A DNA stretch of 64,000 nt from Perkinsela sp. CCAP 1560/9 (lineage: Eukaryota > Protista > Euglenozoa: Kinetoplastea): assembly GCA_965644495.1 (NCBI GenBank), contig CBFFSA010000001.1, forward strand, positions 992,001 to 1,056,000. Direction: 5' to 3'. Positions within the stretch are counted from its first letter, which is position 1. Each line of letters begins with the position of its first letter. Of this stretch, positions 11,120 through 64,000 are shown one piece after another. The position numbers and the translations under genes were made by a program. The notes beneath the pieces were generated by a model. That model had not been told where the DNA came from and searched no databases. It worked only from the letters and a program-made list of their open reading frames with translations.

Positions 11120-12970
11120 ATGAGTCATTGCGAGCTTTCCGTCCAAGATACTACCAATGCCGGCATCGCCCCATACATTTACGATTGTGCTACTCTACGT
11201 TCTTACCGAAAAATTTATTGCGAAACACCACCCGACATGATCGATGTCGAGCATCTACGAGTATCTACGAACGAGGGGGAAGGCGCGGAGGCGCGATCGA
11301 GTGTGTTATCTCGCGATGCCATGCGTACTGGTACGAACGCGCTTGTGATCGGCCACAACGCTTGGTCTTCTCGGCGGAAGCCAAACACGTCAGCGAACGC
11401 TGAATTCGAACGAAAAATGCGTAGTATGCTAAACAAACTTGCGCCAAACAACTACAATGATATTATTCGTACTCTTGATGTGAAGCAGATCTATAACGAC
11501 GAGAACAAAATGATGATCACCGTACAACAAATCTTTGAGAAAGCGTTGCAAGAGCCTATGTACTCGCAGATTTATGTCAATTTTTGTTTGGAAATTTTTC
11601 TTCAAGCTCCTGAAGGTGCCCGAGGGTCACAGGCTTTGTTATTCAAAAGACAAGTTATTAATCAAACACAACGTGAATTTGAAGACATGATGGACGCCCT
11701 GGCAAAAGAGAATCCTTCCGAAGACGAGTTAACTGTAACTTCTAGTGACAAATGGAAACGACGAAAGTATGCCATCATGAAATTCATAGGTGAACTGTAT
11801 TTAGCAAGTATTTTGTCGCGCGATACCATCAAACTTGTGTCCGACAGACTCTTAAATACGTACGAAGAAGATCTTCCGGAGGTCAAATGGCTTGAAATGG
11901 TCTGCACACTCTTGAAGATTGTCGGACGCCGCTTCGAGGTTGATTTTCCAGACCAAATGAGTGTCTCAATGGAAGTTATTAGCGAACTCATTCAACTGGA
12001 TTTCTATGCTCCACGTATTCATTTTATGCTTCAAGATGTATTAGAGACACGAGATTCGAAATGGGTAGCTCGGGTGCAAAAAGCAGATGAACTGCACGTG
12101 GAGATGCGTCCCGCACATTCGTGCGATTCTCTCTCCGCGTACGGAGACACAGACTCTAGAAAGACATCCACTCCGACGTTAGAAACTCCGACAAGAGGAG
12201 GATCCAATCGCTCAAGCGGATTTCCTCCATCTATGCGAAGAAGTTCTAGCAGGGTTGACATTGCGGCACGAGCTACAACTAGTCCATCTACTTCTCGACC
12301 TCGGAGAATCACTGTTGCTAGAAAAGTATTGCCCCCTCGACTACTCGAAGGTGAGTCACGGACGGACGCACTGAAGCTCAATCCATTGAACGTAACAGAC
12401 GTGCGAAACACGTTACTTACTGTGATGTATGACTTTTGTCTACTTGGAAAACGAGAGGATACGGTGGGTAATTTCCTCTTTAATTCCTCATGGGACATCA
12501 TGGATTTAAACGATGCGTTAAGTACAGCGCTTTCCATTGCTATTAGCGAGGAGGCAATGGTGGACGCTCCCCGATTTGTTTCTCGTTGGCTTCGTCTTGG
12601 TCGTCAGTTAACCCAGTGTAAATTGAGCCTTCTGGTCAATCTTCTCGCAGCTTCGATGAAACATTGTTATCGGTACAACGGATCAGTGGAAGGCGCTGAG
12701 GAAACGTTAAAAGAAGTAGTGGCAGAAATATGGGACGACTTTCTCAGTGTGCAGGAGAAGGATAAAGTTGATGCGACGCAAAGCATCCTTGAAGGTCTAT
12801 CGACATTGAGTTCGGTTGCTAGCTGTTCTTCGGTGCTTGTTGAAAAACTAGCTATGCGAGCATCTCGATCTTCCAGGATTAGTCGCGAATCTACCGCATC
12901 GTGGTTCGGTGAGAAGCAGAATTCGGCTAGCGACATGGTTTCCAAATTGAAACCATACTTTTTGTCGTAG
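11120..12970 (+). CDS. eIF4G-family protein (MIF4G domain)
   Basis: RSMLNKLAPNNY, IFEKALQEPMYSQIY, KFIGELY, RIHFMLQDV; N-terminal YDCATLR resembles the YxxxxL-phi eIF4E-binding motif. Confidence 0.9.
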   Translation: MSHCELSVQDTTNAGIAPYIYDCATLRSYRKIYCETPPDMIDVEHLRVSTNEGEGAEARSSVLSRDAMRTGTNALVIGHNAWSSRRKPNTSANAEFERKMRSMLNKLAPNNYNDIIRTLDVKQIYNDENKMMITVQQIFEKALQEPMYSQIYVNFCLEIFLQAPEGARGSQALLFKRQVINQTQREFEDMMDALAKENPSEDELTVTSSDKWKRRKYAIMKFIGELYLASILSRDTIKLVSDRLLNTYEEDLPEVKWLEMVCTLLKIVGRRFEVDFPDQMSVSMEVISELIQLDFYAPRIHFMLQDVLETRDSKWVARVQKADELHVEMRPAHSCDSLSAYGDTDSRKTSTPTLETPTRGGSNRSSGFPPSMRRSSSRVDIAARATTSPSTSRPRRITVARKVLPPRLLEGESRTDALKLNPLNVTDVRNTLLTVMYDFCLLGKREDTVGNFLFNSSWDIMDLNDALSTALSIAISEEAMVDAPRFVSRWLRLGRQLTQCKLSLLVNLLAASMKHCYRYNGSVEGAEETLKEVVAEIWDDFLSVQEKDKVDATQSILEGLSTLSSVASCSSVLVEKLAMRASRSSRISRESTASWFGEKQNSASDMVSKLKPYFLS

Positions 12971-13599
12971 TTTATCCATTAATAGATTCCTCCAAGTGGA
13001 TGCCTAAAGTATCAATTCTCAAAGAGCAGAAATATATGACTAATCATAGCAGATTTAAAAGTTGTTTTAGGAAATACAGTATTCGCCATGATGTTTTTAT
13101 AGAAGTTTGTATTTGAAGGTACTATTACTGGTCATGATGACACAGCGTAGGTCTACAAATGGAGAGTTCTGCTCTTGAATTGTGTCGTGAAGCGGAGAAT
13201 TCCCTTTAATAATGAGATCCATTTCTTTGATAAATAAAAAACGAAGTGTTTTTACTACAAACTTGCCCTTAATTCCTTATTTACATGCATGTAAATCTCC
13301 CTAGTACGACAGTACCATATCATGCACTGTACTATTCGTACAAAGTACGAAAGTTGGCACTTTTTGATCTTATTTGTGAATTTGGGAGCATTCGAAATTG
13401 AAGTCAGCAGTAGTTTCATCTTGAGAAATGATCTATAGATTTAAGAGAGTTCCTTGTGTGTACATCAGTTTAATCTTTTCATCTCCGACCTAATTTATAT
13501 TTCTCCGCATGCTTAGAAAATTTTACGGTGGAGCGGGCGGCTTCAATGAAAGCGAGACAAGTTAGCGCCCACATCCACTTTACGTACCTCTCTTACTTT

Positions 13600-13880
13600 A
13601 CGTACCTCTCAGCGTGCGACACCTCCTAGCTCTCTCATGCAAGAAGTTCCCGAGACCAAAAATATTCATGAGCTCCAAAACAAATTCATTGCTTTCGACA
13701 CACGTGATGTGTGGGAACTGCAGAATAGACTTCTCGTGCAGTGTGTACCTACTTACTTTACGAGTGTTATTAACTTTGTAGGTGTACCAAAACCTCGTAT
13801 CCATCCAATGTGCCATAGCGCTGTACTGTACACCACTTGTCTTTAAACCCCTTTGCCCCCATGGTGCGGCCATGCGTCTT
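13600..13880 (-). pseudogene. Possible highly decayed pogo-like transposase fragment
   Basis: Minus-strand HWMDTRFWY...KSIL, then frameshifted CSSHTS, resembling DDE_1 WM / LLLDxxxxH motifs. Confidence 0.3.
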
Positions 13881-14172
13881 AAACAAACTTATTACGGAAT
13901 TGTAATAATATTCGTAAGCAAAAAAAAATTGAAGGTCGTGAAATTGTGGCGGAGTTTCAAGATTTCTCTGTTGATCTGTTGTTTCCTTCACGAAATGATT
14001 AAGAATGTCTCCCACCTATTGAGGAACCCCATTTGTTGGGGCGCAAATCTTAATTTGCATGAGAATCATAGACAACACAATGATTTTTTTCGCTTTCAGT
14101 CCTCTGAACGCTTCGTGATGTAAGCGGAATATTACATTGTAAAAGCAAAAAAAAATCTTATACACATACATA

Positions 14173-15730
14173 CAGGGGTGGGCGCCTTCAGAGTGGGGGA
14201 GTCTAAAATTCGTAAAACTTGATCAATTTTGGAAAGTAATAGCGCATTCGAGAGCTCTCAAATAGTCTGGTGTAATGGAAACATCCGTTTCCCGTTTTTA
14301 GACATTCGAGATAAATGACAGAAAAACAAGGAATTTATTTTTCCCCGAAGATGCAATTTTTCAGTTTTTTTGGCTTTTTTTAGTTTTTTTGCGCCGTTAA
14401 TGCCTCAGAAACGTGTACGATCGCGAACATCACGGTTTCCCTTCCAGAGAGATGCTTATTCACCACCTGGGAAGGTAAGGCCGTCGCATCGCATGCTTCT
14501 CGTAGACCATTACTTTCGTTCTGGGTCCTACAATGCTACAGCACGCCACTTTGAAGTAGCGGAGAGCACTGTGAAGCGATGGGTCATTCGTTACAGCGAA
14601 ACTGGTGATGTCGAAAGCATTCCCAGACGTCTGAATTTTACAGTTAGGACATCACTGTTTATCGGAGAAGCACTCCGCATAGTAGATGAGGGTACACGGG
14701 ATCTTCCTTATGGTGTGGAATCATGGTGCGCTCTACATCGCGAACTTCTATCCAGAGGGTTTCAGTGTTCCAGACGCACTTTGGCTCGAGCTTTGAAGCC
14801 CGATATTATCCTCCGCGTAGTTCAGCGTAAACCACGACTAACCCAACAGCATAAAGACGTTAGAGTCCGATTCTGTAAGGACATGTCGGGCTGGAGCGAA
14901 CACCAGCTTGATAATATTATTTGGTGTGATGAGAAAAAGTTTACCTGCAAGAAGTCTACCAAAAACACCTACCTTTGCCGACGGTCCGACCCTGTAAAAG
15001 AGCAGCTAGGTGAGCTGGAAGCGTGGGTAGGGGGCGATGGTATAATGGTGTGGATGGGGGTAAGCATAAAGCATGGATTTCATCTGCACATTTTTGCTAA
15101 TAGAGATGAGCAGGGAAATAGAGTTACTGTGAACGGGGCTGTTTTCGAAGCTGCCATGACCAAGCGTAATGGTCTTTTGAACTACCTACACAGGCACCGT
15201 GCAGTTGTTGCTATGGACAATTGCCCTGCGCACAACTTGGCAAGGTGTACTTTTCAGCAGCAAAACGTGCGAACGCTTCCCTGGCCCGCAAAGTCACCGG
15301 ATCTCAACCCCATCGAAAACTTGTGGAATATCATGGATCAGCACAAGGATCGCATGCGACCACGCAATCGCGCAGATCTCCTCTCTTCTATCGAGAGTGC
15401 ATACGAGGCACTTCAAACCGATCTCAAAAGTACTTGCGTGAAGACCATAAAGAGTGTCTCCAGGCGCTTTCAAATCGTTATTGAGAAAAAAGGGGGAAAT
15501 TGTGGGTACTGAGATTTTTTTTGGAAAAAAAGGACTTTTTCGCTTAAAAAATAAAGTTGCAATTCGTGTTTGGGACCATTCTAGCTTTCTTTGATTCCCG
15601 TAAACTTTCGCAGAGTGCTTTTTACGATTACACCAGACTATTTGAGAGCTCTCGAATGCGCTATTACTTTCCAAAATTGAACAAGTTTTACGAATTTTAG
15701 ACCCCCCCACTCTGAAGGTGCCCACCCATG
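14173..15730 (+). mobile_element. Complete Tc1/mariner (IS630-Tc1) DNA transposon
   Basis: 104-bp TIRs (14173-14276 and 15627-15730, 4 mismatches), TA on both sides, single intact transposase. Confidence 0.96.
14400..15512 (+). CDS. Tc1-like transposase, DD32E
   Basis: N-terminal HTH (TARHFEVAESTVKRWV), WCDEKKF, MDNCPAH, WPAKSPDLNPIENLW. Confidence 0.95.
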   Translation: MPQKRVRSRTSRFPFQRDAYSPPGKVRPSHRMLLVDHYFRSGSYNATARHFEVAESTVKRWVIRYSETGDVESIPRRLNFTVRTSLFIGEALRIVDEGTRDLPYGVESWCALHRELLSRGFQCSRRTLARALKPDIILRVVQRKPRLTQQHKDVRVRFCKDMSGWSEHQLDNIIWCDEKKFTCKKSTKNTYLCRRSDPVKEQLGELEAWVGGDGIMVWMGVSIKHGFHLHIFANRDEQGNRVTVNGAVFEAAMTKRNGLLNYLHRHRAVVAMDNCPAHNLARCTFQQQNVRTLPWPAKSPDLNPIENLWNIMDQHKDRMRPRNRADLLSSIESAYEALQTDLKSTCVKTIKSVSRRFQIVIEKKGGNCGY

Positions 15731-24329: not shown

Positions 24330-27300
24330 ATGCAAGCCAAATCTGCGGAACAAAGTGGTGCGAGGAAGCATTTATTTTATCACGTGGATTACACCATGGT
24401 TGTTTTCACTGTATTTTGTTTTCTTCTTGGTTTAGTCTTGCTTGTGCTAAGTCCCTGGTCTCACGTCATTGTGTCTCGCTACTGTGAATGCACAAAATGG
24501 TGTGGTGCGGTGACCATTCCGACCATTTGTCTAAGCGTCCTTACTTGCGTGTGTCTTCCTCTCCTTGCGTACCGTTTCACGCTGTTTTATGACATTGAAC
24601 TCCCTTTCAGAAGAAAAATGAGAGGTCTGTACATTCCCATATTCGTACTACTTATTGTAGCTCTCGTATCAGGCGGTATTCTGACTTTCGTTCTCATATA
24701 CGTTTCTCAAAGTTCCGCAAATTATCAGAGAAGTCATGGGAACGTTGAGGGATTGGATGGGACGATCCGAATTGAGTGGGGAGAGGATGGTACACCGAAG
24801 CTGCAAGCAAAATCACATCGTGACGCCTTTTTTGGACAAGGATTTATCCATGCCCAGGAGCGTTTCTCTCAACTCGTTCTAAGTCGCGCCGCTTCGCAAG
24901 GACGCCTGAGCGAAATATTAGGTAATGCCGGCTTGGAAAATGATATTCGGGTCCGTACGCTGAATTTTGACGCTGTCGCCCGGGCAATGTGTGAAGGGAT
25001 TTCTCCACAGCATCGGTCTTGTATCGAATCCTACGCAGCGGGGGTAAATCTATACCGAAGCCGGCATCCGAAGCCTCCCCCCGACATGTTACTATACTAT
25101 GGACCTTTTAAAAACGTGGCTAAGGTGGAACCGTGGACGGCGCATGATGTGTGTCTGTCTTTGGTACAAATTCAGTCAGAACTATCTAGCAACTGTCAGA
25201 ATGAAATCGATCGCTGGTCTACCTTATTTTCAAATAGCTCTCGTGGAACCGATTACGACAAAGTTGAGCAACTTTACCCGTTTCACCGTTATCTTCGTGA
25301 TTTTGAGGGCAAGCCGTTTACCACAACAGTTACCGAAGAGGATTTAGCGGGTCCCTACTGCACTCCACACGTTTCTAAAAGTCGACACACTAGAGCTATG
25401 GAGGAGGATCATAGCTTTCAACGCGAAAAAGCTGTTTACGACGAAATGTTGGGCGAATGGCGTCAACGCACAGTGCCGTTTCAAATCGAAACGCCACACA
25501 CGGAAGAAATTCCTTCAATATCTCCTGTGCCTCCGCTTGATGCGTCTGCGGCACCTGACGGATTGAATTTATCCCCACACAGCACATCTCATGATTCTGA
25601 GGACAAACACCCTGCTCCAAAACCATCCGACTCAAGCTGGGAATTCTTTGATTTCGTACCCTTCCGTTCTTATATTGAAGACATGACCTTGAGCTGGTTT
25701 CAACTCGGCACCGATCCTTCTTCCCACAATACCTTAAAGCCGGACGCCCCTGCCTCCCCCAACCCTTCCCCTCTCCCTCCCCCCCGCGCATCCTGGTGGT
25801 CCGGCGCCTTCACCCCCCACGGCGGCTCCAACGCCTGGGTCACCCGCTCCCCCACCGCCCCCACCCCCACCCTCGGCAGCGACCCCCACCTCGAGATGTA
25901 CTTCCCCGGGAGCTGGTACTACCTCGCCCTCCACATCACCGACACCAACCAAACCTTCCTCGGGGCCTCCCCCCCGGGACTCCCCGGGATCACCGTCGGG
26001 GCCTCCACCACCCTCGCCTGGGGCATCACCCTGGCCATGACCGACCTCTGCGACCTCTACGTCATCACCCCCGACCCGAGTCGCCCCCAGACCCACTACC
26101 TCCACAACGGAACCTCCCTCCCCTATCGCACCCGACACGAACGGGTTGTGGTCCGCGGGAAGCAACGACCCGTGGCTCTCCAGCTTCGGGACACCCACTA
26201 CGGGCCACTGGTTCATCACCTTCCCGGGGTGGCTGGGGCTAACTCGGGTGTGTTGCTGGCCATGTGGAATGCGGCCCTGCAAGGGGGCAGTGCGGCAAGG
26301 ACCCTGGAGGGGTTCCTGCTGATGGTCACCGGGGAGGTGGCGACGGTCCGGGGGTTTCGGGAGGCCTGCCTGGAACGGATCGCGGCCCCCGCGTTGAGTG
26401 TGGTCCTGGGGGATCACGCCGGGGGGTATGGGTGGGGGATGACGGGGAGGCACCGGATTCGGCGACCCGGGCACACGGGGCGGTACCCGATGCCGGGGAA
26501 TGGGTCGTTTGACCCGGTGGGGGAGATTCCGATGAGGGAGCTGCCGTGGAAGGTTGTGCCGGCGGAGGCGGCGGGGGGTGGGGGGAAAGAGGTTGATTTT
26601 ATCACGGCGGGGAATAATAAAATGTATCCTCTGGCGTACCGTTACGCACTGGGGTATGACTATTTTCCCTATTTCCGTGCGACGCGTATGGCGGAGATGC
26701 TTGCTGGAAGGGGCTGCGACAGTGTTTCTCGAGCAGCGGAGATTCAGCTGGACAACCAGTCAAATTTGTGGACTACGTTGTTTCGTCCCTGGTTACAGAC
26801 TCAGCCCGGGTTACGGCTTCGTCATCCGTTTCTTCAGGAAATGTACACACGGTGGGAGGGAGCGGTGGTTCCCGGGTGTCGGTACCCTGCTGTGCTGTGG
26901 GAGTATCTCTCCATTGTGACACAGATTGCGTTTGAGGGACGAAAACGACGGGACCACGCACCGGTGGATCCTATTTTAGGATACTACTGGAGTGTGGACC
27001 ACGCCGGGAGTGTGGCGTTAGAACGGGCCTGGGAACAGGCCATCTACGCTCCCGTCGGGGGCTGGACGGAGGACTGGGGCTACGTGCAACTCCCTCACCT
27101 TACCCTCGCCCTTACCCCCTTTCGGTGTTTCGGGAACCGCTACCCAAGAAAACTGGGCGGAGACGAGTCTTCGTTGAATATGATGCGCGGGCGACGTCCC
27201 GGAGCCAGTCACGTGAGGAGAATCGGTCCCGCATTACGTCAGATTCTCCGTGTGGGAGAGGAAGTCCACGTCGCGAGTGTTGGAGGGGGATCAGAGAACC

Positions 27301-27431
27301 CTTTCAGTCCGTTCTATGACAACACGCTCCAGCAGTGGAGTGTGGGAGAATACCGGAAAAAGACATTCGCCGAAGTTGGGAATTTGACCCGTACGGACGG
27401 CGCACCAGTGCAGTACTTAAGAGTTAGGTAA
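24330..27431 (+). CDS. Penicillin acylase / AHL acylase family Ntn hydrolase with N-terminal TM helices
   Basis: FFGQGFIHAQERF, GRLSEILG, YAAGVN, GG|SNAWV (catalytic Ser), GSDPHL, PGSWY, AWGIT, THYGP, SENPFSPFY. Confidence 0.9.
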   Translation: MQAKSAEQSGARKHLFYHVDYTMVVFTVFCFLLGLVLLVLSPWSHVIVSRYCECTKWCGAVTIPTICLSVLTCVCLPLLAYRFTLFYDIELPFRRKMRGLYIPIFVLLIVALVSGGILTFVLIYVSQSSANYQRSHGNVEGLDGTIRIEWGEDGTPKLQAKSHRDAFFGQGFIHAQERFSQLVLSRAASQGRLSEILGNAGLENDIRVRTLNFDAVARAMCEGISPQHRSCIESYAAGVNLYRSRHPKPPPDMLLYYGPFKNVAKVEPWTAHDVCLSLVQIQSELSSNCQNEIDRWSTLFSNSSRGTDYDKVEQLYPFHRYLRDFEGKPFTTTVTEEDLAGPYCTPHVSKSRHTRAMEEDHSFQREKAVYDEMLGEWRQRTVPFQIETPHTEEIPSISPVPPLDASAAPDGLNLSPHSTSHDSEDKHPAPKPSDSSWEFFDFVPFRSYIEDMTLSWFQLGTDPSSHNTLKPDAPASPNPSPLPPPRASWWSGAFTPHGGSNAWVTRSPTAPTPTLGSDPHLEMYFPGSWYYLALHITDTNQTFLGASPPGLPGITVGASTTLAWGITLAMTDLCDLYVITPDPSRPQTHYLHNGTSLPYRTRHERVVVRGKQRPVALQLRDTHYGPLVHHLPGVAGANSGVLLAMWNAALQGGSAARTLEGFLLMVTGEVATVRGFREACLERIAAPALSVVLGDHAGGYGWGMTGRHRIRRPGHTGRYPMPGNGSFDPVGEIPMRELPWKVVPAEAAGGGGKEVDFITAGNNKMYPLAYRYALGYDYFPYFRATRMAEMLAGRGCDSVSRAAEIQLDNQSNLWTTLFRPWLQTQPGLRLRHPFLQEMYTRWEGAVVPGCRYPAVLWEYLSIVTQIAFEGRKRRDHAPVDPILGYYWSVDHAGSVALERAWEQAIYAPVGGWTEDWGYVQLPHLTLALTPFRCFGNRYPRKLGGDESSLNMMRGRRPGASHVRRIGPALRQILRVGEEVHVASVGGGSENPFSPFYDNTLQQWSVGEYRKKTFAEVGNLTRTDGAPVQYLRVR

Positions 27432-36882: not shown

Positions 36883-37903
36883 GTGGCCAATACCCAGGTC
36901 GACAAAGCCGTCCTGGCATGTGCTGAGGCCTTGCTCGGGGGGATGGGCTCCTTGGGGAAAACGCCGTTCTCCAATAACCTTTTCACGGCAGATTTCCTGG
37001 GGACCATCTCCTTCGAGCATAAGGCGGAAGACATGCAGGCCAAGGCGAAGAACGCCCTACAGGGCCGACCCCAAGGCATGTCAGCCAAGGAACAGCGGCG
37101 CAACCTCTGTGAGGCCGCGTTGAGGAAAGCCCCGACGGCCACCCAACTGGTCTGTATGCGACAGACCCAGAACATTCACTCCACTAAGTGGATGAACGCA
37201 TGGCCCAACAGGCCGGAGTATTACATGCAGGACCCGCAGTGGGAGACTGCGGCCCGTCTCCGGTACTTGGTCGCCCCCACCTCGGAACCTGAGCTCCAGT
37301 GCGTGTGCGGTGCAACCCTCCGCAATGAGGAGTTTTGCGTACACGCACTGGATTGCAAGAAGGTTAAGGGGAAAACCCAGGCCTCCCGCCACAAGGAGGT
37401 CAAGGAAACCTTTCGAAACCTTCTTGTGCAATATGGTTTCAAACCGGACCTACACGAACCGAGGTTCGACAATGGACGGGGGCCCGACATATGCTTCCAG
37501 CTGGGACGGAAGACTGCCCTAGTTGATGTCACCGTGGTGAACCCACTGGCCCCGTCCTACGTGGAGAAGGAGGCCGCAGAGCCTTCTCATACTCTGAGGA
37601 TGGCGGAGGCCAACAAGCGACGCTCACACGATGAGATGGCGACCGCCCGAGGGATGGAATTTTACCCCTTGGCCTTCACCACGCACGGGATCCCGGGCCC
37701 AGAGACCTTGAACTTCCTAACCAAGGTGGCCCGGGCCCACACATCCGACAAGAACGGATGCATGTCCCACCTTCTGATGGCCATAGGGGTGGCCATCCAG
37801 AAAGGTAATGCCCAGATTGTACAGGCGGCAGTACAAGACTGGTACCGCTGCGGGGTACGAGGCTAGCTGGGCGATGGGGTTTAGGGAGAAAGGGAAAAAA
37901 AAA
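36883..37903 (+). mobile_element. 5'-truncated CRE-clade non-LTR retrotransposon (zinc knuckle plus restriction-like endonuclease)
   Basis: CVCG...HALDC, RH, PD, VDVTVVNP, EANKRR, FYPLAFTTHG, IQKGNA; GC content jumps at the 5' junction; short 3' UTR ending in an A-tract; no RT domain. Confidence 0.85.
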
Positions 37904-55385: not shown

Positions 55386-55905
55386 GGGATGGCAGGACAG
55401 AAAATCAACGCACCCATGAACAAAACGGGATAGACTATCCAATGCTGAAACAATGAACAAAAACGGATAAAAAAGCAAAATAAAAAAAGGTAATTGAGCG
55501 GAAAAATGTAAACAATTGTCTCTTTTCCAGAAAATGATCTAAAAAAGCATATTTTTTCATGGGGGATATCAGGGGGTCCCTACAAAAAAAGCGACAAACC
55601 ACCAATGCTGCAAAAATAAACAAAAAAACAAACAAAACTGAAACTAAATAAACAAAACTGGTACCGTAGGGGCGTGCGCTAATGGGCTCGGGGGCGGACA
55701 ACAAAAAAAAATGTGAGATAGGTATGGATTCGGAACATTCATCCGAATCCGGCGATCAAAACCCAACTTCGTGACCGTGCCGCTGTCGGCACATGCCCGC
55801 GCCTGCGCCCTCCCGTATAACAAGGGAAGGGTTCCCAAGCCAGGCCGTGGAGAGGTCGAGAGACCCGGTCCGAAGCGCGCATTGCTGGAAGAAGGGGTGG
55901 AGCAC

Positions 55906-56075
55906 GCGCGGATGGATTCTTGGGGGGCAGTGAGGGAAAGAAGAGGGCAAAGTTTGAAAGGCGCGGATGGATGCTCGGGGAGGGGGAAGTGAGGGAAAGA
56001 AGCGGGTGAAGTCGGGAAGTCGCGGATGGTTGCTTGGGGGGGGGGATAAGGAAGAGAAGCGGGCGAAGTAAAGTA
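55906..56075. repeat. Three purine-rich copies of a 55-59-bp unit (CGCGGATGG...GGGG...AGAAG)
   Basis: Units start near 55906, 55961 and 56020. Confidence 0.7.
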
Positions 56076-56204
56076 AGTAGGAAAGTAAGTAAGAAAGTGA
56101 TACCGTACATTCATAGAAAGTTAGAACTCATACTCTTCCCCCCCTATTATCTGCAAAAAAAAATGATAAAGATAACGATAACGATAAAGATACATTATCA
56201 CAGA

Positions 56205-56277
56205 CTTCATAAACACGCTTGTCACCGGTCTCAAGCCCGGCGTCGTCTTCTTAACAAGACGAAGTGTGAGGGTGAAG
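56205..56277 (+). ncRNA. Twister self-cleaving ribozyme (type P1 with a P5 hairpin)
   Basis: P1 CTTCA/TGAAG; U^AA; P2 ACAC/GTGT; GC (T2); P4 CCGG/CCGG with loop TCTCAAGC; P5 TCGTCTT/AAGACGA; GA-GGG (catalytic G, T1 with CUC). Confidence 0.9.
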
Positions 56278-56572
56278 AATGTCATTGTACGATAAAGTAC
56301 GATTTTTTAATATCTATTCATCTCTTCGTTTGTTGAACATACAGGTTTGTTGAACAAACACACTATATAATCATTGGTTCTGATCCAAAGATAGGATATA
56401 CATATTTTATTTACATGTTGACATTCCATGTGGGACCGAGCCTGGCACCACATTCGTGATTTTATTCCGGTTCGTTTTAGCCCTGATCGGGGAAAACATA
56501 CCGTTCGCGCCAAATTGCACTACCCCGAGGACCTTTGTGACTCACGGTGGACGATTATTATTATTATTATTA

Positions 56573-57346
56573 TTTGCCTCGAGGTCCTTCGGGCCTGACG
56601 GTTGGCACTTCACCTCGAGGTTCTTCGGAACTGACGGTTGGTGGTTACACTTTGTCTCGAGGTCCTTCGGGACTGACGGTTGGCACTTCACCTCGAGGTT
56701 CTTCGGAACTGACGGTTGGTGGTTACACTTTGCCTCGAGGTCCTTCGGGACTGACGGTTGGCACTTCACCTCGAGGTTCTTCGGAACTGACGGTTGGTGG
56801 TTACACTATGCCTCGAGGTCCTTCGGGACTGACGGTTGGCACTTCACCTCGAGGTTCTTCGGAACTGACGGTTGGTGGTTACACTATGCCTCGAGGTCCT
56901 TCGGGACTGACGGTTGGCACTTCACCTCGAGGTTCTTCGGAACTGACGGTTGGTGGTTTTACTTTGCCTCGAGGTCCTTCGGGACTGACGGTTGGCACTT
57001 CACCTCGAGGTTCTTCGGAACTGACGGTTGGTGGTTTTACTTTGCCTCGAGGTCCTTCGGGACTGACGGTTGGCACTTCACCTCGAGGTTCTTCGGAACT
57101 GACGGTTGGTGGTTACACTTTGCCTCGAGGTCCTTCGGAACTGACGGTTGGCACTTCACCTCGAGGTTCTTCGGAACTGACGGTTGGTGGTTACACTTTG
57201 CCTCGAGGTCCTTCGGGACTGACGGTTGGCACTTCACCTCGAGGTTCTTCGGAACTGACGGTTGGTGGTTTTACTTTGCCTCGAGGTCCTTCGGGACTGA
57301 CGGTTGGCACTTCACCTCGAGGTTCTTCGGAACTGACGGTTGGCAC
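56573..57346 (+). repeat. Ten copies of a 78-bp unit, giving 20 cUUCGg hairpins (36+42-bp dimer)
   Basis: CCTCGAG-GTCC-TTCG-GGAC-TGACGG alternates with CCTCGAG-GTTC-TTCG-GAAC-TGACGG. Confidence 0.95.
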
Positions 57347-57795
57347 ATCACTTCGAATGATCATTAAGGGTAGATTTCTTGTAGTCGTAAATTTAATGAT
57401 TATTGTAAGCAAAGATTGCTGATCATCACACAGTACCACTGCCGTTTGTGTTGTTTTCCAGTGTACTGGAAGTAAAGAAAAAGAAGCGGATAGAAAAAAT
57501 GAAATTGTCTGTGTGACGCACCTTATACGACTCGCGTAGGCGGGTCAGTTTTGCACTGCTTTTTTTTCGCGGATTTCTAATGCAATGCCTTTACGGCTAC
57601 GCATCTGTGTGCGTATCTAATAAAAGATGCTCAACGTATTTGACACCCCTTAGAGTTTTGTTTTACGCTTCAAAACCTAGAATGATGACAAGAAGGGGGG
57701 GAGGGAGTTGACCTGCGGTGCCAATGGGCATGCCTGTCACTGGGTTTGGTCCTGGTATAAAGGCCGTTCCTCGGTGAACCGTTCCGTCGTGTGGT

Positions 57796-58060
57796 GAGGT
57801 CCTTGGGACTTGCTTCGCGTTCCGGATTTTGTGATCCGAGGCCCCTTATGGCTCTGTTTCCACTACACTTGTTGTAGTGAGAGGTCCTTTGGACTTGTTT
57901 AGTGTTCCGGATTTTATGATCCGAGGCCTTTTATGGCTCCATTTCCACTACAATTGGTGTAGCGGGGTCCTTTGGGCTTGTTTCGCGTTCCGGATTTTAT
58001 GATCCGAGGCCTTTTATGGCTTCATTTCCACTACAATTGGTGTAGTGAGGTTTGGACTTG
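57796..58060 (+). repeat. About 3.2 copies of an 83-85-bp hairpin-rich unit
   Basis: Units start at 57796, 57881, 57964 and 58047; each full unit has four short inverted repeats. Confidence 0.88.
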
Positions 58061-58570
58061 GTTTGCGCGATGAGGAGATTTCGACCGGAGTATCGGAGAT
58101 TCACATCCAATTTGATGTTGTTTTTTAATGTATTGTTTCAAGTCCTTTTTGAGGTGATTGGTGGCACCATCCATAGCTTGACTGATGTTTGTAGGATGAA
58201 GGTGCTCTGGAAATGTGTGAACATTTCCTACGATTGTCAGAGAGAAAAAAAGAAGCTTTTGTTTCGAATTGTTACTTTTGAAAACGTGAAGAAAAGAGGG
58301 CATAGAAATAGGGAAGTCTACTTTTCAAAATGTGATCGCCTCGCTGTTTGATTCAGCGCGCCGTCAAACGTACCGCAGTTTAGAGCTTTTAGTAGCGGTG
58401 GTCTTTGTGAAACATTTGCTACGATTGTTTAGTGGGGTGTTAGTGTGCTTTACGAACGGTAGGTGACTCGGGATATGACGTCCGAAACTGATCTTCGAAC
58501 GATGTGAGCAAGCATATGGTCCCACTTTTGATGGATAAGAAGAAGAAAGAAGGAGAAAAAGAGCTATTCG

Positions 58571-58735
58571 GTGCCATGGCTTGCCAGGCGTACTGGGCTT
58601 GGTCCCGGTTCCAAGGTGCTTATGAAGTCTGTGATAATGAGGGTGTTGCTAATCCCTGGACAGTATGCTGCCCAGGGACACAGCAACTCCCCATTATCTC
58701 GGCGTAGTAAACACGCCTTGGCTTGCCTGGCACTG
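58571..58735 (-). ncRNA. Putative structured RNA (long hairpin plus decayed twister 5' half); 98-bp inverted copy at 62513-62610
   Basis: Nested complementary segments; on the minus strand CATTATCACAGACTTCATAA...ACCGG...CAAGCCC is shared with 56193-56238. Confidence 0.55.
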
Positions 58736-58930
58736 GACCCAATGCAGTCCCCGGGTGGCCCGTAGTGGACTAAGTGGCACAAGACGACCCACAGTGGCCC
58801 ATAGTGGCCCCAAAAATCGAGCGTCGCCGGAGAATCGTGACGACATAGAGGCAAGTGATTCTCTGATAAGTAGCGTACCTAGCTAAGTATAGTGAGGAGG
58901 GGCAACTGTATATGAGCGTAGAGTGTATGA

Positions 58931-60112
58931 TCATAGGGGGTTATTGGTTGAGTGCTGGTGGGGGGATTGTTGTTCACGAAAAAAAACATACGCATCAAGA
59001 TTTTTAGGATACGTGTATTTGTCCATCGGACCTGTGATAGTAGAACTGTCAGATACTCCATATCTGGAAGATTGTCCTTTGTGCTCTATTATCTTCTTTT
59101 TAACTGCTTCCACTTTCTCAGGGGTAAGAGGTGGATATCTTCCTTGAGGTCCATGTTTATGAAACACTTCCATGTTATGAACCATGAGAGCGCACGAAAA
59201 CGCATAGTAAAGAAAATCTGGACTACGAGTCCACTGCTTAAAAGCCAGCCATTTGCCACAGCACGAACGAGAAAAAATGTGTTCGACCCGCGATCTAAAG
59301 TGAGCCAACTTTCCATTGAAGCACATTTTACCATCTGCTTCTGAATCATGATGTTTCTGCATAGACTTAGATTTTGGGCGCTTCGAACACCAAATTTTGG
59401 CTTTAGAATGGGGTACTATTAATCTATCAGTAAGACCATCGTAAAATCCCCCGTCAGCAAGAGCGCGAACACGATTGTGTGCCAGAAAATCCAGAATACC
59501 ACTACAGTCCTGAATAACGGCGTCGGATGAGGCTCCACAGTACAATGTGTCTGCTGTGAAGCAAACATACCCAGACATTGTAGATGCTACGAGCGCTTTC
59601 ACGACGTGTGTAGCATATTTGGGTTGATAGCAGTGAGGCAAGCTATCAACGTACAGTGGCACTGTGTCCATCACCACCTTTATGTCCTTATCCCAAAAAG
59701 GAAGAACTGCGTTTGATTCATGGTGCAAAATATCAGAATCCAAACAAAGCCATGTATCCTTCATATCGGAATGCAGTTTTTTAAAAAACGCGGGTATCTT
59801 GTCAGAACAAGAACGTTCAGACCAACCGGTTCCGAATTTCAAGGATATGAGTTCTGATACAATGTCGTAGCTACCCCCACACCGCAAAAAAAGAAAGCTC
59901 GCAAAAATTTCTTCAAAGGGATAAAATTGTTTTAGAAAGGTGAGAGCGCGATGCGTTAAACCGCATAAAGACAACTCTGAATATTTATTTTCGTAGGGAG
60001 CATCAGGTTCAGGTGCATCGCCGGATGTATCAGGTGGTGCGTCACGGGTTTCAGATATATTAACGGGTGTGTCATATTCCGGGGTGTCAATACGGCCAAG
60101 CATCAGTATCAA
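58931..60112 (-). CDS. PIF/Harbinger-type DDE transposase (DDE_Tnp_4-like), intact
   Basis: FLFLRCGGSY HTH-like region, VMDTVP (D), GASSD, LADGGFY (D), LIVPH, FNGKLAHFRSRVEHIF (E). Confidence 0.85.
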   Translation of the reverse strand: MILMLGRIDTPEYDTPVNISETRDAPPDTSGDAPEPDAPYENKYSELSLCGLTHRALTFLKQFYPFEEIFASFLFLRCGGSYDIVSELISLKFGTGWSERSCSDKIPAFFKKLHSDMKDTWLCLDSDILHHESNAVLPFWDKDIKVVMDTVPLYVDSLPHCYQPKYATHVVKALVASTMSGYVCFTADTLYCGASSDAVIQDCSGILDFLAHNRVRALADGGFYDGLTDRLIVPHSKAKIWCSKRPKSKSMQKHHDSEADGKMCFNGKLAHFRSRVEHIFSRSCCGKWLAFKQWTRSPDFLYYAFSCALMVHNMEVFHKHGPQGRYPPLTPEKVEAVKKKIIEHKGQSSRYGVSDSSTITGPMDKYTYPKNLDAYVFFREQQSPHQHSTNNPL

Positions 60113-60284
60113 GTAGAGGAAAGATTATTATGATTTTATTAGAGGAAAGAAAGATTCTATATTAAATAAAATTCTTTGATTTACGATTTTTTTTTGAATT
60201 CCTTACTTCCAAATTCCTTACTTGCAACTTTTTCACTTACAACATAACCGCTTAAAACTTACTTGCGATTTACAGGCCTACAAC

Positions 60285-61181
60285 TTACTTACGACTTTTA
60301 AAATGCAAAGTGTTCGAACTTGAAGTTGAAGCAATGCGGGAAACGCGTTGCCGCTTCGGATTGCTGACCAGGTTTTCATCGTTCCGAACTTCAACTATCT
60401 CAACTTCCTGATCTGCGGCAGTCAAAGTTTGACGAGGAGGTCGGGCAACGTGAATAAGATGAGCATTCGAAGTCTTTCCCTTCTTGAGAATCCGCAGTTG
60501 AACAAGGTCGTCCCGGATAGAAAGAAGTTCAGTAGGAACATTCTCCTCCATTGAATTGCCAAGTTTGTCCATAATCTCACCCTGAACTTGGTGAACAAAC
60601 TTTCGATCAATTTCAAATGTTGAGTCACCTAGAACCGACAAAAAACTTGCTACCAACGCAGTCTTTGTGTCTCTCAGAACCTTCTTTTCATTGGCGCGCT
60701 TGCCCTCATACAAGTTCCAGAGGTTTCGCAAAAACTCCTGCAGAGAGCCCCGCTCCTCTGGATGCAACGCATGGTTAAAATACGAGCAAACTGCTTCGGC
60801 CGAACGCGGGATATATCTTTTTATAGAAACATCTTTTGCCCTTTTGATAAGAATAAGGATGTGGGCCACATGTCCGAACGCAAGCTTCGTACCGCAGAGC
60901 ATGCGACCCACGTACTCAGCACATGCGTTAAGAACATTTTCTTCCTTCAGACCACGAGCATAAATGTGGTCTAAGGTGTTGGCGGGAAGTCGTTCTCCAT
61001 CTTGAGGGGAATTGCACAACGGACAGTAGTTTGAACCTATGAGAACTGAAACCCTGTGACACTGAATACAGGGGTCCTTTACATCGCATTCGATGGGACA
61101 GGCACACATTACACACCTTCGGGGTTCTCCAAGACTTACGTTACGGTCTGCTTTGCAGCGTGGACAAAACATTTTTTCCAT
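60285..61181 (-). CDS. Zinc-ribbon protein (4 CxxC pairs), probable second ORF of the Harbinger-like element
   Basis: CPRC, CVMC, CIQC, CPLC at the N-terminus; NLS-like PKRQR; co-oriented 172 bp upstream of the transposase, opposite to host genes. Confidence 0.65.
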   Translation of the reverse strand: MEKMFCPRCKADRNVSLGEPRRCVMCACPIECDVKDPCIQCHRVSVLIGSNYCPLCNSPQDGERLPANTLDHIYARGLKEENVLNACAEYVGRMLCGTKLAFGHVAHILILIKRAKDVSIKRYIPRSAEAVCSYFNHALHPEERGSLQEFLRNLWNLYEGKRANEKKVLRDTKTALVASFLSVLGDSTFEIDRKFVHQVQGEIMDKLGNSMEENVPTELLSIRDDLVQLRILKKGKTSNAHLIHVARPPRQTLTAADQEVEIVEVRNDENLVSNPKRQRVSRIASTSSSNTLHFKSRK

Positions 61182-61827
61182 TTTAGTAGCTTCATTACTG
61201 TGAAACAGACGTTTAATTCTAGATGTACATAGTTACTTCATTTCGTTCTATTTTACAACTGCTGTACGTGGTCGACCAAAAATACATGAGAACGAAATCC
61301 TTACGAACTCAATATACACAACATAAAAGCAATCAAAAGGCACAACTTAAACTTTGAAGTGTCCAATCGTGGCACCGATTGTCCCATAGTGGCCCACAGT
61401 GTCCCATAGTGGCCCCAGAAATGTACCGAAGTTGCTGGGGGTCCACTGTAATCGCCGAGAGAGAAAAAAAACTCGCGCCTCTCGTGGTACGAGAAGGAGC
61501 AGGCTGAACAGAAGTCGGAAGATCCGGTGCGAAGTACGCACGAATGATTTGGATCTGCTTGAAAGAATTTGTGTGGGGGGCCTCCCCGAGAAGATGTGAA
61601 GTCCCGTGAGGGGAAGCAAGATCTCGCCCTGGTCGCTTCTGCAAAAAAAGGAAAAAAAAAGGGTTGGTAAATTACATCCCGCTATGGGAGACGAGTAAGC
61701 GAGTAAGTTGTAGGTTGTAAATATATTGCCAACGCCGCATTATTGAGTGCATTACGCGGGGCGCGTTGATAGAAAAAAAAAAAAAAGAAGGGAAATATTA
61801 GAAGTTTGCTTTAAGATGCAGGATTTT

Positions 61828-62298
61828 AGATCTTTATGGTGTTCGCAGCCTTATGACAGATTGTTTGTGACGTTTGTGATCCGTTATTCGAAATCTTTGT
61901 GCTTTAATCGGTTATTTGGGGATCTTTGTGACCCGTTGTTTGGGATCTTTGATATACGTTATTTGGGGTTTTTGTGACCCATTGTTCAGGAGTTTTTTGA
62001 TCGGTTGTTGAGGATTGGTTGTATGGGGATCTTTGTGATCTGTTTTTTTTGTGATCCTTTCGACCTCTTACTTAGGATATTTCTGATCGTTTGTTTGGTA
62101 TCTATGAAGTCCTTATGATTCATTGCATGGGATCTTTGTAATCGGATGTGTATATTACCTGATTGGTTTGTTTGTTTGTTTGTTTGTTTGTTATCTTTGT
62201 GATCGGTTCACTTGAAATCTTAATGACCCATTATTTGTTATCTCGTGTTTGGGATCTTTGTGACCCACCGTTTGTGGCCTTCGTGATCTTTGTGATCA
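61828..62298. repeat. Degenerate array of GGATCTTTGTGA(T/C)C motifs
   Basis: About 15 variably spaced copies in a GT-rich background. Confidence 0.7.
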
Positions 62299-62608
62299 GT
62301 GCTAAAAAAGAATCCGTAAAAAAAGAGCTTATCAAACGTGCGGGTACAGCACGTACTTGCACACCCTGGTTCCGTATCCCAGCCTTCTTGACGCACGTCG
62401 AAAGACGTGTTGCCGGGGAGATCACTCGGATACGGAAACGGGCCCCTTAAGTGGGAAGCATGCTGGGCTGTGAAATGACTGGGGAGAAATATTTTTTCTC
62501 TCTCGGCGATTACAGTGCCAGGCAAGCCAAGGCGTGTTTACTACGCCGAGACAATGGGGAGTTGCTGTGTCCCTGGGCAGCATACTGTCCAGGGATTAGC
62601 AACACCCT

Positions 62609-64000
62609 CAGTTTCTGTACCTTGTTGACTTATTTTTCTTTCCCTATTTCTTTTATCCGGACAATGAGGGAGGCTGATTCCTGCGGCTCGACGACGATAC
62701 GAGAAGATGACCTTTTTGCCCAAGAGGAGAAAACGCACACGCCAGCTCCTGGGACCAGTTTGAGGGTAATTAGCATCTTATCGCTGCAACTAGTACATAC
62801 GATGAATCCCTCTACACGACGCCCATACCAGAAAATATTACACCGGCCTGGCAAGACAAAATGGAAACGGCACTACAATCTTTGCACCGAGAGAAGCAGA
62901 CACCCGACACGGGGATGATTTTATCGGCAGACGAAGAGAGAAATCATTCCAGCGTATCAAGAGACTGTGCCCCCAATACGTCTGGCAAAGGTCAAGAAGT
63001 AACAAGCCAAACCCCAGAGCGGTACGAACCACATTCCATGGCCACAGCGAGGCTTCTCCCACGAAAAAGCCCTCTTTCTAGCCAAAAGTCGACGCCCAAA
63101 ATTTTCGAGAGAGGGGTTAGTAAAGATTCCAAGACTCGCCAACCAGCTAGACGAGACACAATGAGACGTCGCACCTGTCCAGTAGAAGTGTGCAACTGGA
63201 GCACCGCATCACACGGAGGGAAGTGGCAGGCCTACTACCATCATGTCGCAAGCCAACATAGCGATACTGTGCCTTCGGAATGGTGGGAAAAAGAAGGACG
63301 TTTCTTATGCCCCTCATGCGGCAAGCACTATGATCACAATAAAAAAGCTTCCCATGAGGAAAAATGTCAAGACTCCTTGGGCTCTTACACCTCGTCACTA
63401 ACCTGTGAGCCAGAAACCGAAGAGGCTTTCATTTCCCAAATTTACAGGGATTCGCTCCCGTCTCTTGATTGTGTCTGCTCTTACGCCATCAACACATGCA
63501 AAGATGTACCATTCCGATGCAAACAACAGTGGGCCTCTGTTTTGACTCAAACAATGGCTGCAGTGGTTAGAGAGAACTCGGTTGAGGCCTGGACACGCTT
63601 AGCGATGCTCCCAAAATGTGTCCTGCCCGCGCCCAAAAGAGGGGGACGAAAAGGAAATTCGTCCTATACCACGAAAACGGGCCAACGCATGGATCGCTCG
63701 GAATCCAGGGAATACGCGGCACTGTGGAACGAATCTGTTGCGCAAATGGTAAAGAAGCGGGAGAGGAACGACGATGAGGAAGTGGACGAGTCCGGCAAGG
63801 CGGCGAAACGAGCCGAGTTGCTGGCCAGACAAGGGGAGTTTTCCCGTGCGATGCAAGCTCTTACAGCAGCACCGATGGCACCTGAATCCGAAGAAACTTA
63901 CGAAAAACTCCAATCGAAGCACCCAGGTAGATTGCCTTTATCATCTTCCGTCACATTCCGACCCATAGAGGGAGAGCCTTTACATCTATCCGAAGGCGAA
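62609..64000 (+). mobile_element. 5' part of a CRE-clade non-LTR retrotransposon (continues beyond the window)
   Basis: Frame open from 62774 to the window end (absent from the ORF track): zinc fingers CPVEVC...HVASQH and CPSC...HEEKC, then AWTRLAMLPKCVL...RGG and GEFSRAMQAL...EKLQSKHP, typical of the region before the CRE RT; spliced-leader-like 19-mer at the 5' junction. Confidence 0.85.

Follow-up and report, generated by a model that had tools for sequence, protein, structure and literature searches.

In R2, the 5′ end of the retroelement RNA is set by an HDV-like ribozyme, and the CRE, SLACS and CZAR elements are LINEs which insert into the spliced leader (SL) of kinetoplastids by means of a restriction-like endonuclease, generating target duplications. 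The element described here lies within a 64,000-nucleotide stretch of the genome of Perkinsela sp. CCAP 1560/9, hereafter the window. It belongs to a family which shares SL insertion with CRE, SLACS and CZAR, but which uses a tyrosine recombinase (YR) instead.

The Dictyostelium element DIRS-1 (PMC7192593) has Gag, RT/RH and YR, an internal complementary region (ICR) which is complementary to both element ends, and integration over a short overlap without target duplication, all of which are also found in the present family. The ICR of DIRS-1 is essential, restoring sequence that is missing from the transcript, but reverse transcription can begin without it (PMC7192593). The present family differs from DIRS-1 in having no inverted terminal repeats, in the position of its ICR (5′ of gag, and not near the right end), in its gag-YR-RT order, in a twister ribozyme as 5′ end with the ICR match dropping at the cut, and in the hairpin arrays of its leader. 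A methyltransferase domain, which is a feature of DIRS-1, was not detected in a Pfam scan of the three ORFs of the family.

VIPER and TATE (PMC6681497, PMC12278014) resemble the present family in their kinetoplastid hosts, gag-YR-RT/RH order, lack of target duplication and non-autonomous derivatives (SIRE). However, in the described elements the direct repeats are split (A1...B1 A2 B2) and the YR and RT genes overlap, whereas an inverted 5′ junction copy and a ~340-bp YR-RT gap are seen here. TATE also targets telomere repeats instead of SL relics, and no ribozyme has been reported for either element. As neither the inverted terminal repeats of DIRS-1 nor the split direct repeats of VIPER/TATE were found, the element is filed under neither group, kinship to VIPER/TATE having been judged only from the pairwise resemblance to a locus of Bodo saltans described below.

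A self-cleaving ribozyme sets the RNA 5′ end, as is proposed here, in the twister variants of Perere-3 (PMC8501958) and in the Pr77 of ingi/L1Tc (PMC12278014). These are non-LTR elements which insert by target-primed reverse transcription, and the upstream P1 strand of Perere-3 derives from the target duplication (PMC8501958), whereas here that strand is encoded by the element and kept in its ICR. Retrozymes (PMC4918200) are likewise non-autonomous, ribozyme-bearing and mobilised in trans. They differ in their circular RNA and in their direct LTRs, each of which contains a hammerhead, whereas the present element has a single twister and a YR-type junction and lacks LTRs. An earlier note on this DNA had suggested a retrozyme-like non-autonomous element; its description as non-autonomous and mobile is retained, but direct LTRs, a hammerhead and a second ribozyme are all absent. 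A search of the literature (mainly open-access) on ribozymes together with DIRS, VIPER or YR elements gave no ribozyme-headed YR element.

The element and its copies

The twister and the array had at first been read as a stand-alone ncRNA system or scaffold. This reading was abandoned, since the array occurs only in the leader of a YR retrotransposon and the element continues to position 62610. The features of the window copy and its flanks are as follows.

56181-56192, + strand: left flank, 5′ half of an SL exon relic, split by the insertion
56193-62610, + strand: whole non-autonomous YR retrotransposon copy, with boundaries common to the copies
56193-56238, + strand: element head A, the 18 nt before the predicted cut plus the twister 5′ half, with an inverted copy in the ICR
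56206-56276, + strand: twister ribozyme, P1 type with a P5 stem (Rfam RF03160, 34.4 bits, E 6.8e-5)
56573-57346, + strand: leader array of 10 x 78 bp, giving 20 cUUCGg-capped hairpin subunits (a and b) (TRF)
57796-58049, + strand: second leader array of 3 x 83 bp, multi-hairpin, with a GAGG-stem-CU motif (TRF)
58595-58735, − strand: ICR, right end B (58735-58638) joined to head A (58639-58595), representing the circle junction
58736-61443, − strand: DDE_Tnp_4 (PIF/Harbinger-like) DNA transposon, a later insertion, with a second ORF (Pfam PF13359)
61444-62512, + strand: non-coding body of the non-autonomous subfamily, 93-96% identical in L062, L066 and L067
62513-62610, + strand: right end B with a terminal long hairpin, 97/98 identical to its own ICR copy
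62611-62627, + strand: right flank, 3′ half of that SL exon relic, at the head of a LINE-like sequence

A genome search identified nine copies with the array, which share a sharp left end (56193 in the window) and extend far past the array. The twister was present in eight of these, the ninth (L009) being 5′-truncated and without the head, so that the association of twister and array expected by the earlier note does recur at other loci. Array subunits numbered 115 genome-wide, and every one lay inside these nine copies. The sister copies L063, L065 and L069 contain three ORFs on the twister strand, of 347, 293 and 585 aa. In L063 and L065 the 293-aa ORF matched Phage_int_SAM and Phage_integrase, with R...H-x-x-R visible, and the 585-aa ORF matched RVT_1 and RVT_3 (RT-RNase H), both matches being weak and below curated cut-offs; the 347-aa ORF was called gag-like from its position only. 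The layout is twister - hairpin array - ICR - gag - YR - RT/RNase H - right end. No match to gag, YR or RT was obtained inside the window copy by tblastn, which identifies it as a non-autonomous YR retrotransposon, and the body at 61444-62512 occupies the place which these genes have in autonomous copies. The array was kept in every ORF-less copy of the family.

Across the genome, a same-strand twister was found 2.6-4.8 kb upstream in 12 of 21 YR loci (0.9% expected by chance), and none of the 21 had a twister on the opposite strand or downstream. The twister and array are almost certainly the 5′ leader of a YR retrotransposon. A TIR DNA transposon or MITE, drawn from the two inverted twister halves, was rejected, since the element does not stop at the inverted half, which adjoins a right-end copy, but extends as far as 62610.

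The DDE_Tnp_4 insertion is absent from the sister copy L061. It abuts the edge of the ICR, its second ORF is cysteine-rich, and it is flanked by an apparent 5-bp duplication (CACTG), which is longer than usual for the PIF/Harbinger superfamily.

Predicted ribozyme cut, probable end restoration and insertion site

The twister was the sole credible Rfam match in the window at E ≤ 10, and the whole window gave no match at the gathering threshold. The gathering score of RF03160 (67.2) is reached neither by the window twister nor by the best in the genome (39.1 bits); the absence of P3 and the extra P5 stem lower the score. P1, the UAA cleavage loop, P2, P4, both pseudoknots (T1 and T2) and all core nucleotides are present, with one T1 pair being U-G. 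Among 19 genomic relatives, 90.4% of the cells of the structure were paired, compared with only 32-50% in slid-register controls, and 45 double changes were counted against 16.9 in shuffles. The cut is predicted between 56210 and 56211, and self-cleavage at this site would set the 5′ end of the element RNA. A further multi-copy twister-like family (L060 and six other matches, 24.4 bits) has an altered P1 and cleavage loop, and no ICR was seen within 1.5 kb of L060.

The left and right ends of the element do not match each other, each matching the ICR only, and inverted terminal repeats are therefore absent. The prediction made beforehand, that the head and its ICR copy would agree fully up to the cut and less closely beyond it, was borne out. 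In 12 lineages, which are mutually related, so that formal p-values overstate their independence, but which gave a uniform pattern, identity was 272/279 (97.5%) before the cut and 267/351 (76%) after it. The fall was seen in 12/12 lineages, and the catalytic loop was altered in every ICR copy. Bases before the cut which are specific to a subfamily are common to head and ICR, and in some families near-identity continues for ~9 nt beyond the cut. As the match drops at the predicted cut site, it is probable from these comparisons that the ICR restores the bases which the twister removes. A second, antisense twister at 58595-58639 was considered and rejected, its core being altered and its 3′ half absent.

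When the flanks of the window copy were joined via their common CA, an SL motif with 540 genomic matches was restored. In the five copies having both ends, the element ends overlap the target by CA and there is no target duplication. On joining, the SL exon motif was intact in the window copy, L065, L066 and L067, while the C8 copy lies in a related CAGTTT site. The SL 3′ half follows seven of nine right ends, with a version with three mismatches following an eighth (chance ~1e-5 per site). The restored motifs and the SL 3′ half at the right ends indicate that the family's targets are SL relics, here found at the head of other retroelements. The SL 3′ half was rejected as a part of the element itself, since the SL 5′ half is in the left flank, the downstream sequences differ and the C8 flank is non-SL.

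The host of the insertion is an SL-headed LINE-like sequence with zinc-finger motifs (62611-64000), which as judged by eye probably belongs to the CRE clade (named in PMC12278014). It should also be noted that the SL 5′ part is briefly stuttered within the left flank (56170-56192), and that at G000:C2:770821-770911 the left and right junction patterns are only ~70 bp apart, possibly representing a minimal remnant of a related element.

It is proposed that a read-through transcript would enter the element and that the twister cut would give it a defined 5′ end without a promoter, stripping the first 18 nt and with them the 5′ strand of P1. Reverse transcription would be primed at the RNA 3′ end, by the terminal hairpin or by ICR pairing, although the ICR is dispensable for this step in DIRS-1 (PMC7192593). 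By analogy with the DIRS model, the cDNA 3′ end would then anneal to the ICR and copy back the lost bases and the right end, giving the circle junction, and the YR would integrate the circle at the CA overlap, mostly inside SL-exon relics. Trans-splicing would remove the array-bearing leader from the gag, YR and RT mRNAs, while unspliced genomic RNA would keep the array, and the window copy would have been moved in trans by proteins of autonomous copies. As a whole, this model of a YR retrotransposon leader with ribozyme cut, ICR restoration, SL integration and an RNA handle is regarded as quite likely.

With clearly less than even confidence, it is suggested that the family represents an undescribed structural class of kinetoplastid YR retrotransposon, in which the twister replaces a promoter-defined start, the 5′ ICR rebuilds the ribozyme in each cycle, the array tags unspliced RNA to be packaged and the recombinase is directed to the SL. 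If true, this would be the first ribozyme-dependent cycle in the DIRS order, and would offer a candidate packaging signal for that order, for which none was found described. Starting and end restoration in the DIRS order are largely a model, tested only in DIRS-1, and the base-precise predicted cut, with a shift of ICR fidelity there in 12 lineages, makes end restoration directly testable. The twister would gain a second biological role besides that in Perere-3, the array would be a concrete candidate cis signal for the travel of ORF-less copies, and SL-directed integration would be a new type of target for tyrosine recombinases.

The hairpin array and its possible role

An array of 10 x 78 bp with 20 cUUCGg hairpins, ~300 nt past the twister and on the same + strand, had been described in the earlier note and was confirmed with TRF (56573-57343, 9.9 copies, 98% identity). 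Subunits a and b, with lengths of 36 and 42 nt, differ at 7/36 positions, six of which form three double-compensated pairs (3-35, 4-34 and 14-21; P ~1.6e-4 under random placement). The inner change, GTCC/GGAC to GTTC/GAAC, had already been noticed and is real, while two further pairs in the outer stem (UGCC/GGCA to CACC/GGUG) had been missed. The outer pairs fix the CC/GG closure of the stem, which had also been proposed, at unit positions 5-6 with 32-33. In the supported fold, a subunit has an outer stem of 4 bp, then a UU bulge and 3 bp, followed by an A/GA internal loop and 5 bp capped by UUCG.

Between the autonomous and non-autonomous subfamilies the 78-bp unit shows 0/72 differences, compared with 31/265 (11.7%) in the adjacent leader, and the folding energy of the array is −296.6 kcal/mol for the + strand against −206.1 kcal/mol for the − strand. 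Covariation, invariance between subfamilies and this strand bias support the earlier suggestion that the array is selected as RNA, and selection for a + strand RNA structure is considered likely. Under unlimited span, ViennaRNA preferred inter-unit pairing via the CCUCGAGG palindrome (−296.6 kcal/mol, against −250.8 kcal/mol for 20 hairpins); the 20-hairpin fold was best only under local folding, the local hairpins reaching a probability of ~0.9 only at a span of 40. The statement that copies vary mostly in the linkers holds when bases are counted (8/11) but not when events are counted (2/5 in linkers, 3/5 in stems). Within the family, single mutations kept pairs in 9/23 events against 30% expected, which is not significant (p 0.23), although the most recurrent ones do keep pairs.

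Copies of the element contain from 2 to 12 units, and a/b chimeras occur. Together with the breaking of pairs by single mutations at the expected rate, this would suit an array arising neutrally by RT slippage, with compensation through hairpin-templated repair and sameness through gene conversion. However, the internal loops have been retained, although templated repair should have erased them, and neutral expansion does not suit the lack of any difference between the subfamilies in the unit beside an 11.7% divergent leader, the presence of the array in all ORF-less copies or the recurrence of arrays across many families. A neutral origin is accordingly judged improbable.

Slightly less probable again is that the array acts as dsDNA or single-stranded cDNA, presenting repeated palindromic CCTCGAGG sites to the recombinase or a host factor. 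Each subunit does contain a palindrome of 8-10 bp, palindromes are also present in the arrays of other families, including the interrupted palindromes of the Bodo units, and DIRS cDNA is single-stranded (PMC7192593). Binding of dsDNA would need no double compensation between subunits, though, and only the + strand can make use of the G-U pairs and UUCG loops, the − strand folding much worse. The array also lies at least 380 bp from the crossover.

The subunit lengths are both divisible by three and two frames are open through the array (56456-57367 and 56547-57422), as would be expected of a repeat encoding protein. Both frames lack an ATG ahead of the array, and the units of 83, 119, 124, 46, 22 and 25 bp in other arrays are not multiples of three, which leaves a coding repeat as the least credible of the readings. 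The earlier statement that copy-to-copy changes are non-synonymous in both frames needs correction, as each frame also has one synonymous change (translations read by eye).

Opposed GA/GA can be drawn in the subunits, and the earlier note had compared these with a K-turn or SECIS core; both registers fail. A K-turn was taken to require a 3-nt bulge 5′ of tandem G-A/A-G plus a paired C-helix, and with such a bulge the first two pairs of the C-helix do not form in either subunit, whichever direction is read. A SECIS has a RUGA/GA core, a helix II of 11-13 bp, an AAR loop and a place in the 3′ UTR of a selenoprotein. The subunit has a UCGA core, a 5-bp helix and a UUCG loop, with no gene upstream and no Rfam match. 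An independent ribozyme-processed ncRNA scaffold with such cores, or a retrozyme, is therefore very improbable: although twister and structured array share a strand, the array is never found outside the YR element, a 3-nt bulge with paired C-helix is absent, and so are the LTR pair and second ribozyme of a retrozyme.

Most of the other twister families were viewed to 1.5 kb past the twister, together with loci L069-L074 from a public assembly. Arrays behind the twister were found in other families with units of 119-123, 124, 46, 63, 22, 25 and 26 bp, and L072 has the full layout with a 124-bp unit. The array is not universal, being absent between twister and ICR in L048, L052, L053 and L059. 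The 83-bp array of the window is confined to the non-autonomous subfamily and carries the same GAGG-stem-CU motif as the 78-bp array. This motif, which was defined after inspection of the arrays, occurs about twice per unit in the 78, 83, 119 and 124-bp units and 0.16 times per kb elsewhere in the window.

At just under even confidence, the array is taken as a multivalent site letting Gag or RT pick full-length genomic RNA. In the same element, it could instead protect or route the RNA, by blocking 5′-3′ decay from the uncapped 5′-OH, suppressing trans-splicing in the leader or binding a host export factor. The position of the array directly behind the ribozyme cut, the stability of cUUCGg hairpins and the differences among the arrays of different families would agree with such a function, as would the translation-related roles of ribozyme-made 5′ ends in viruses and Perere-3 (PMC8501958). 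Against this, the internal loops and the GAGG-stem-CU motif are exactly kept, which suggests specific recognition over mere stability. Protection or routing is thus rated unlikely, and recognition by Gag or RT is preferred.

Contigs from three public runs of a single study also contain the array stretch; since one of these runs may be the source sample, this argues only modestly against an assembly artefact. None of the listed runs containing the array was recorded as RNA, and the one putative RNA run gave no match.

The Bodo saltans locus and other features of the window

The best named relative of the RT was Bodo saltans CUF79501.1 (27% identical), with the YR of the same gag-YR-RT locus being 24% identical. 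This locus contains 16 covarying hairpin units with a G-C/C-G swap, which are interrupted palindromes, and an inverted copy of the far end, both before gag. Neither the Bodo locus nor two metagenome loci yielded a twister, the head lying off those contigs. The Bodo saltans gag-YR-RT locus L075 (CYKH01000408.1; 47-765, 955-1398 and 7721-7866), with its covarying hairpin array and inverted end copy ahead of gag, carries the annotation 'transmembrane protein'. A search for relatives gave 847 at E ≤ 1e-30.

The genes of the window are intron-free and nearly all on one strand. In two runs, the contig depth over a hairpin-rich region at 55710-55950 summed to 12,000-15,000, compared with ~60-200 nearby, and the region is therefore considered a very high-copy repeat adjoining the element. 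An ORF at 36883-37866 resembles the C-terminal zinc-knuckle and restriction-like endonuclease of a LINE and has no Pfam match. A Tc1/mariner-type transposase (DDE_3) was found at 14370-15512, and a gene of the penicillin-amidase family, in this protist genome, at 24330-27431.
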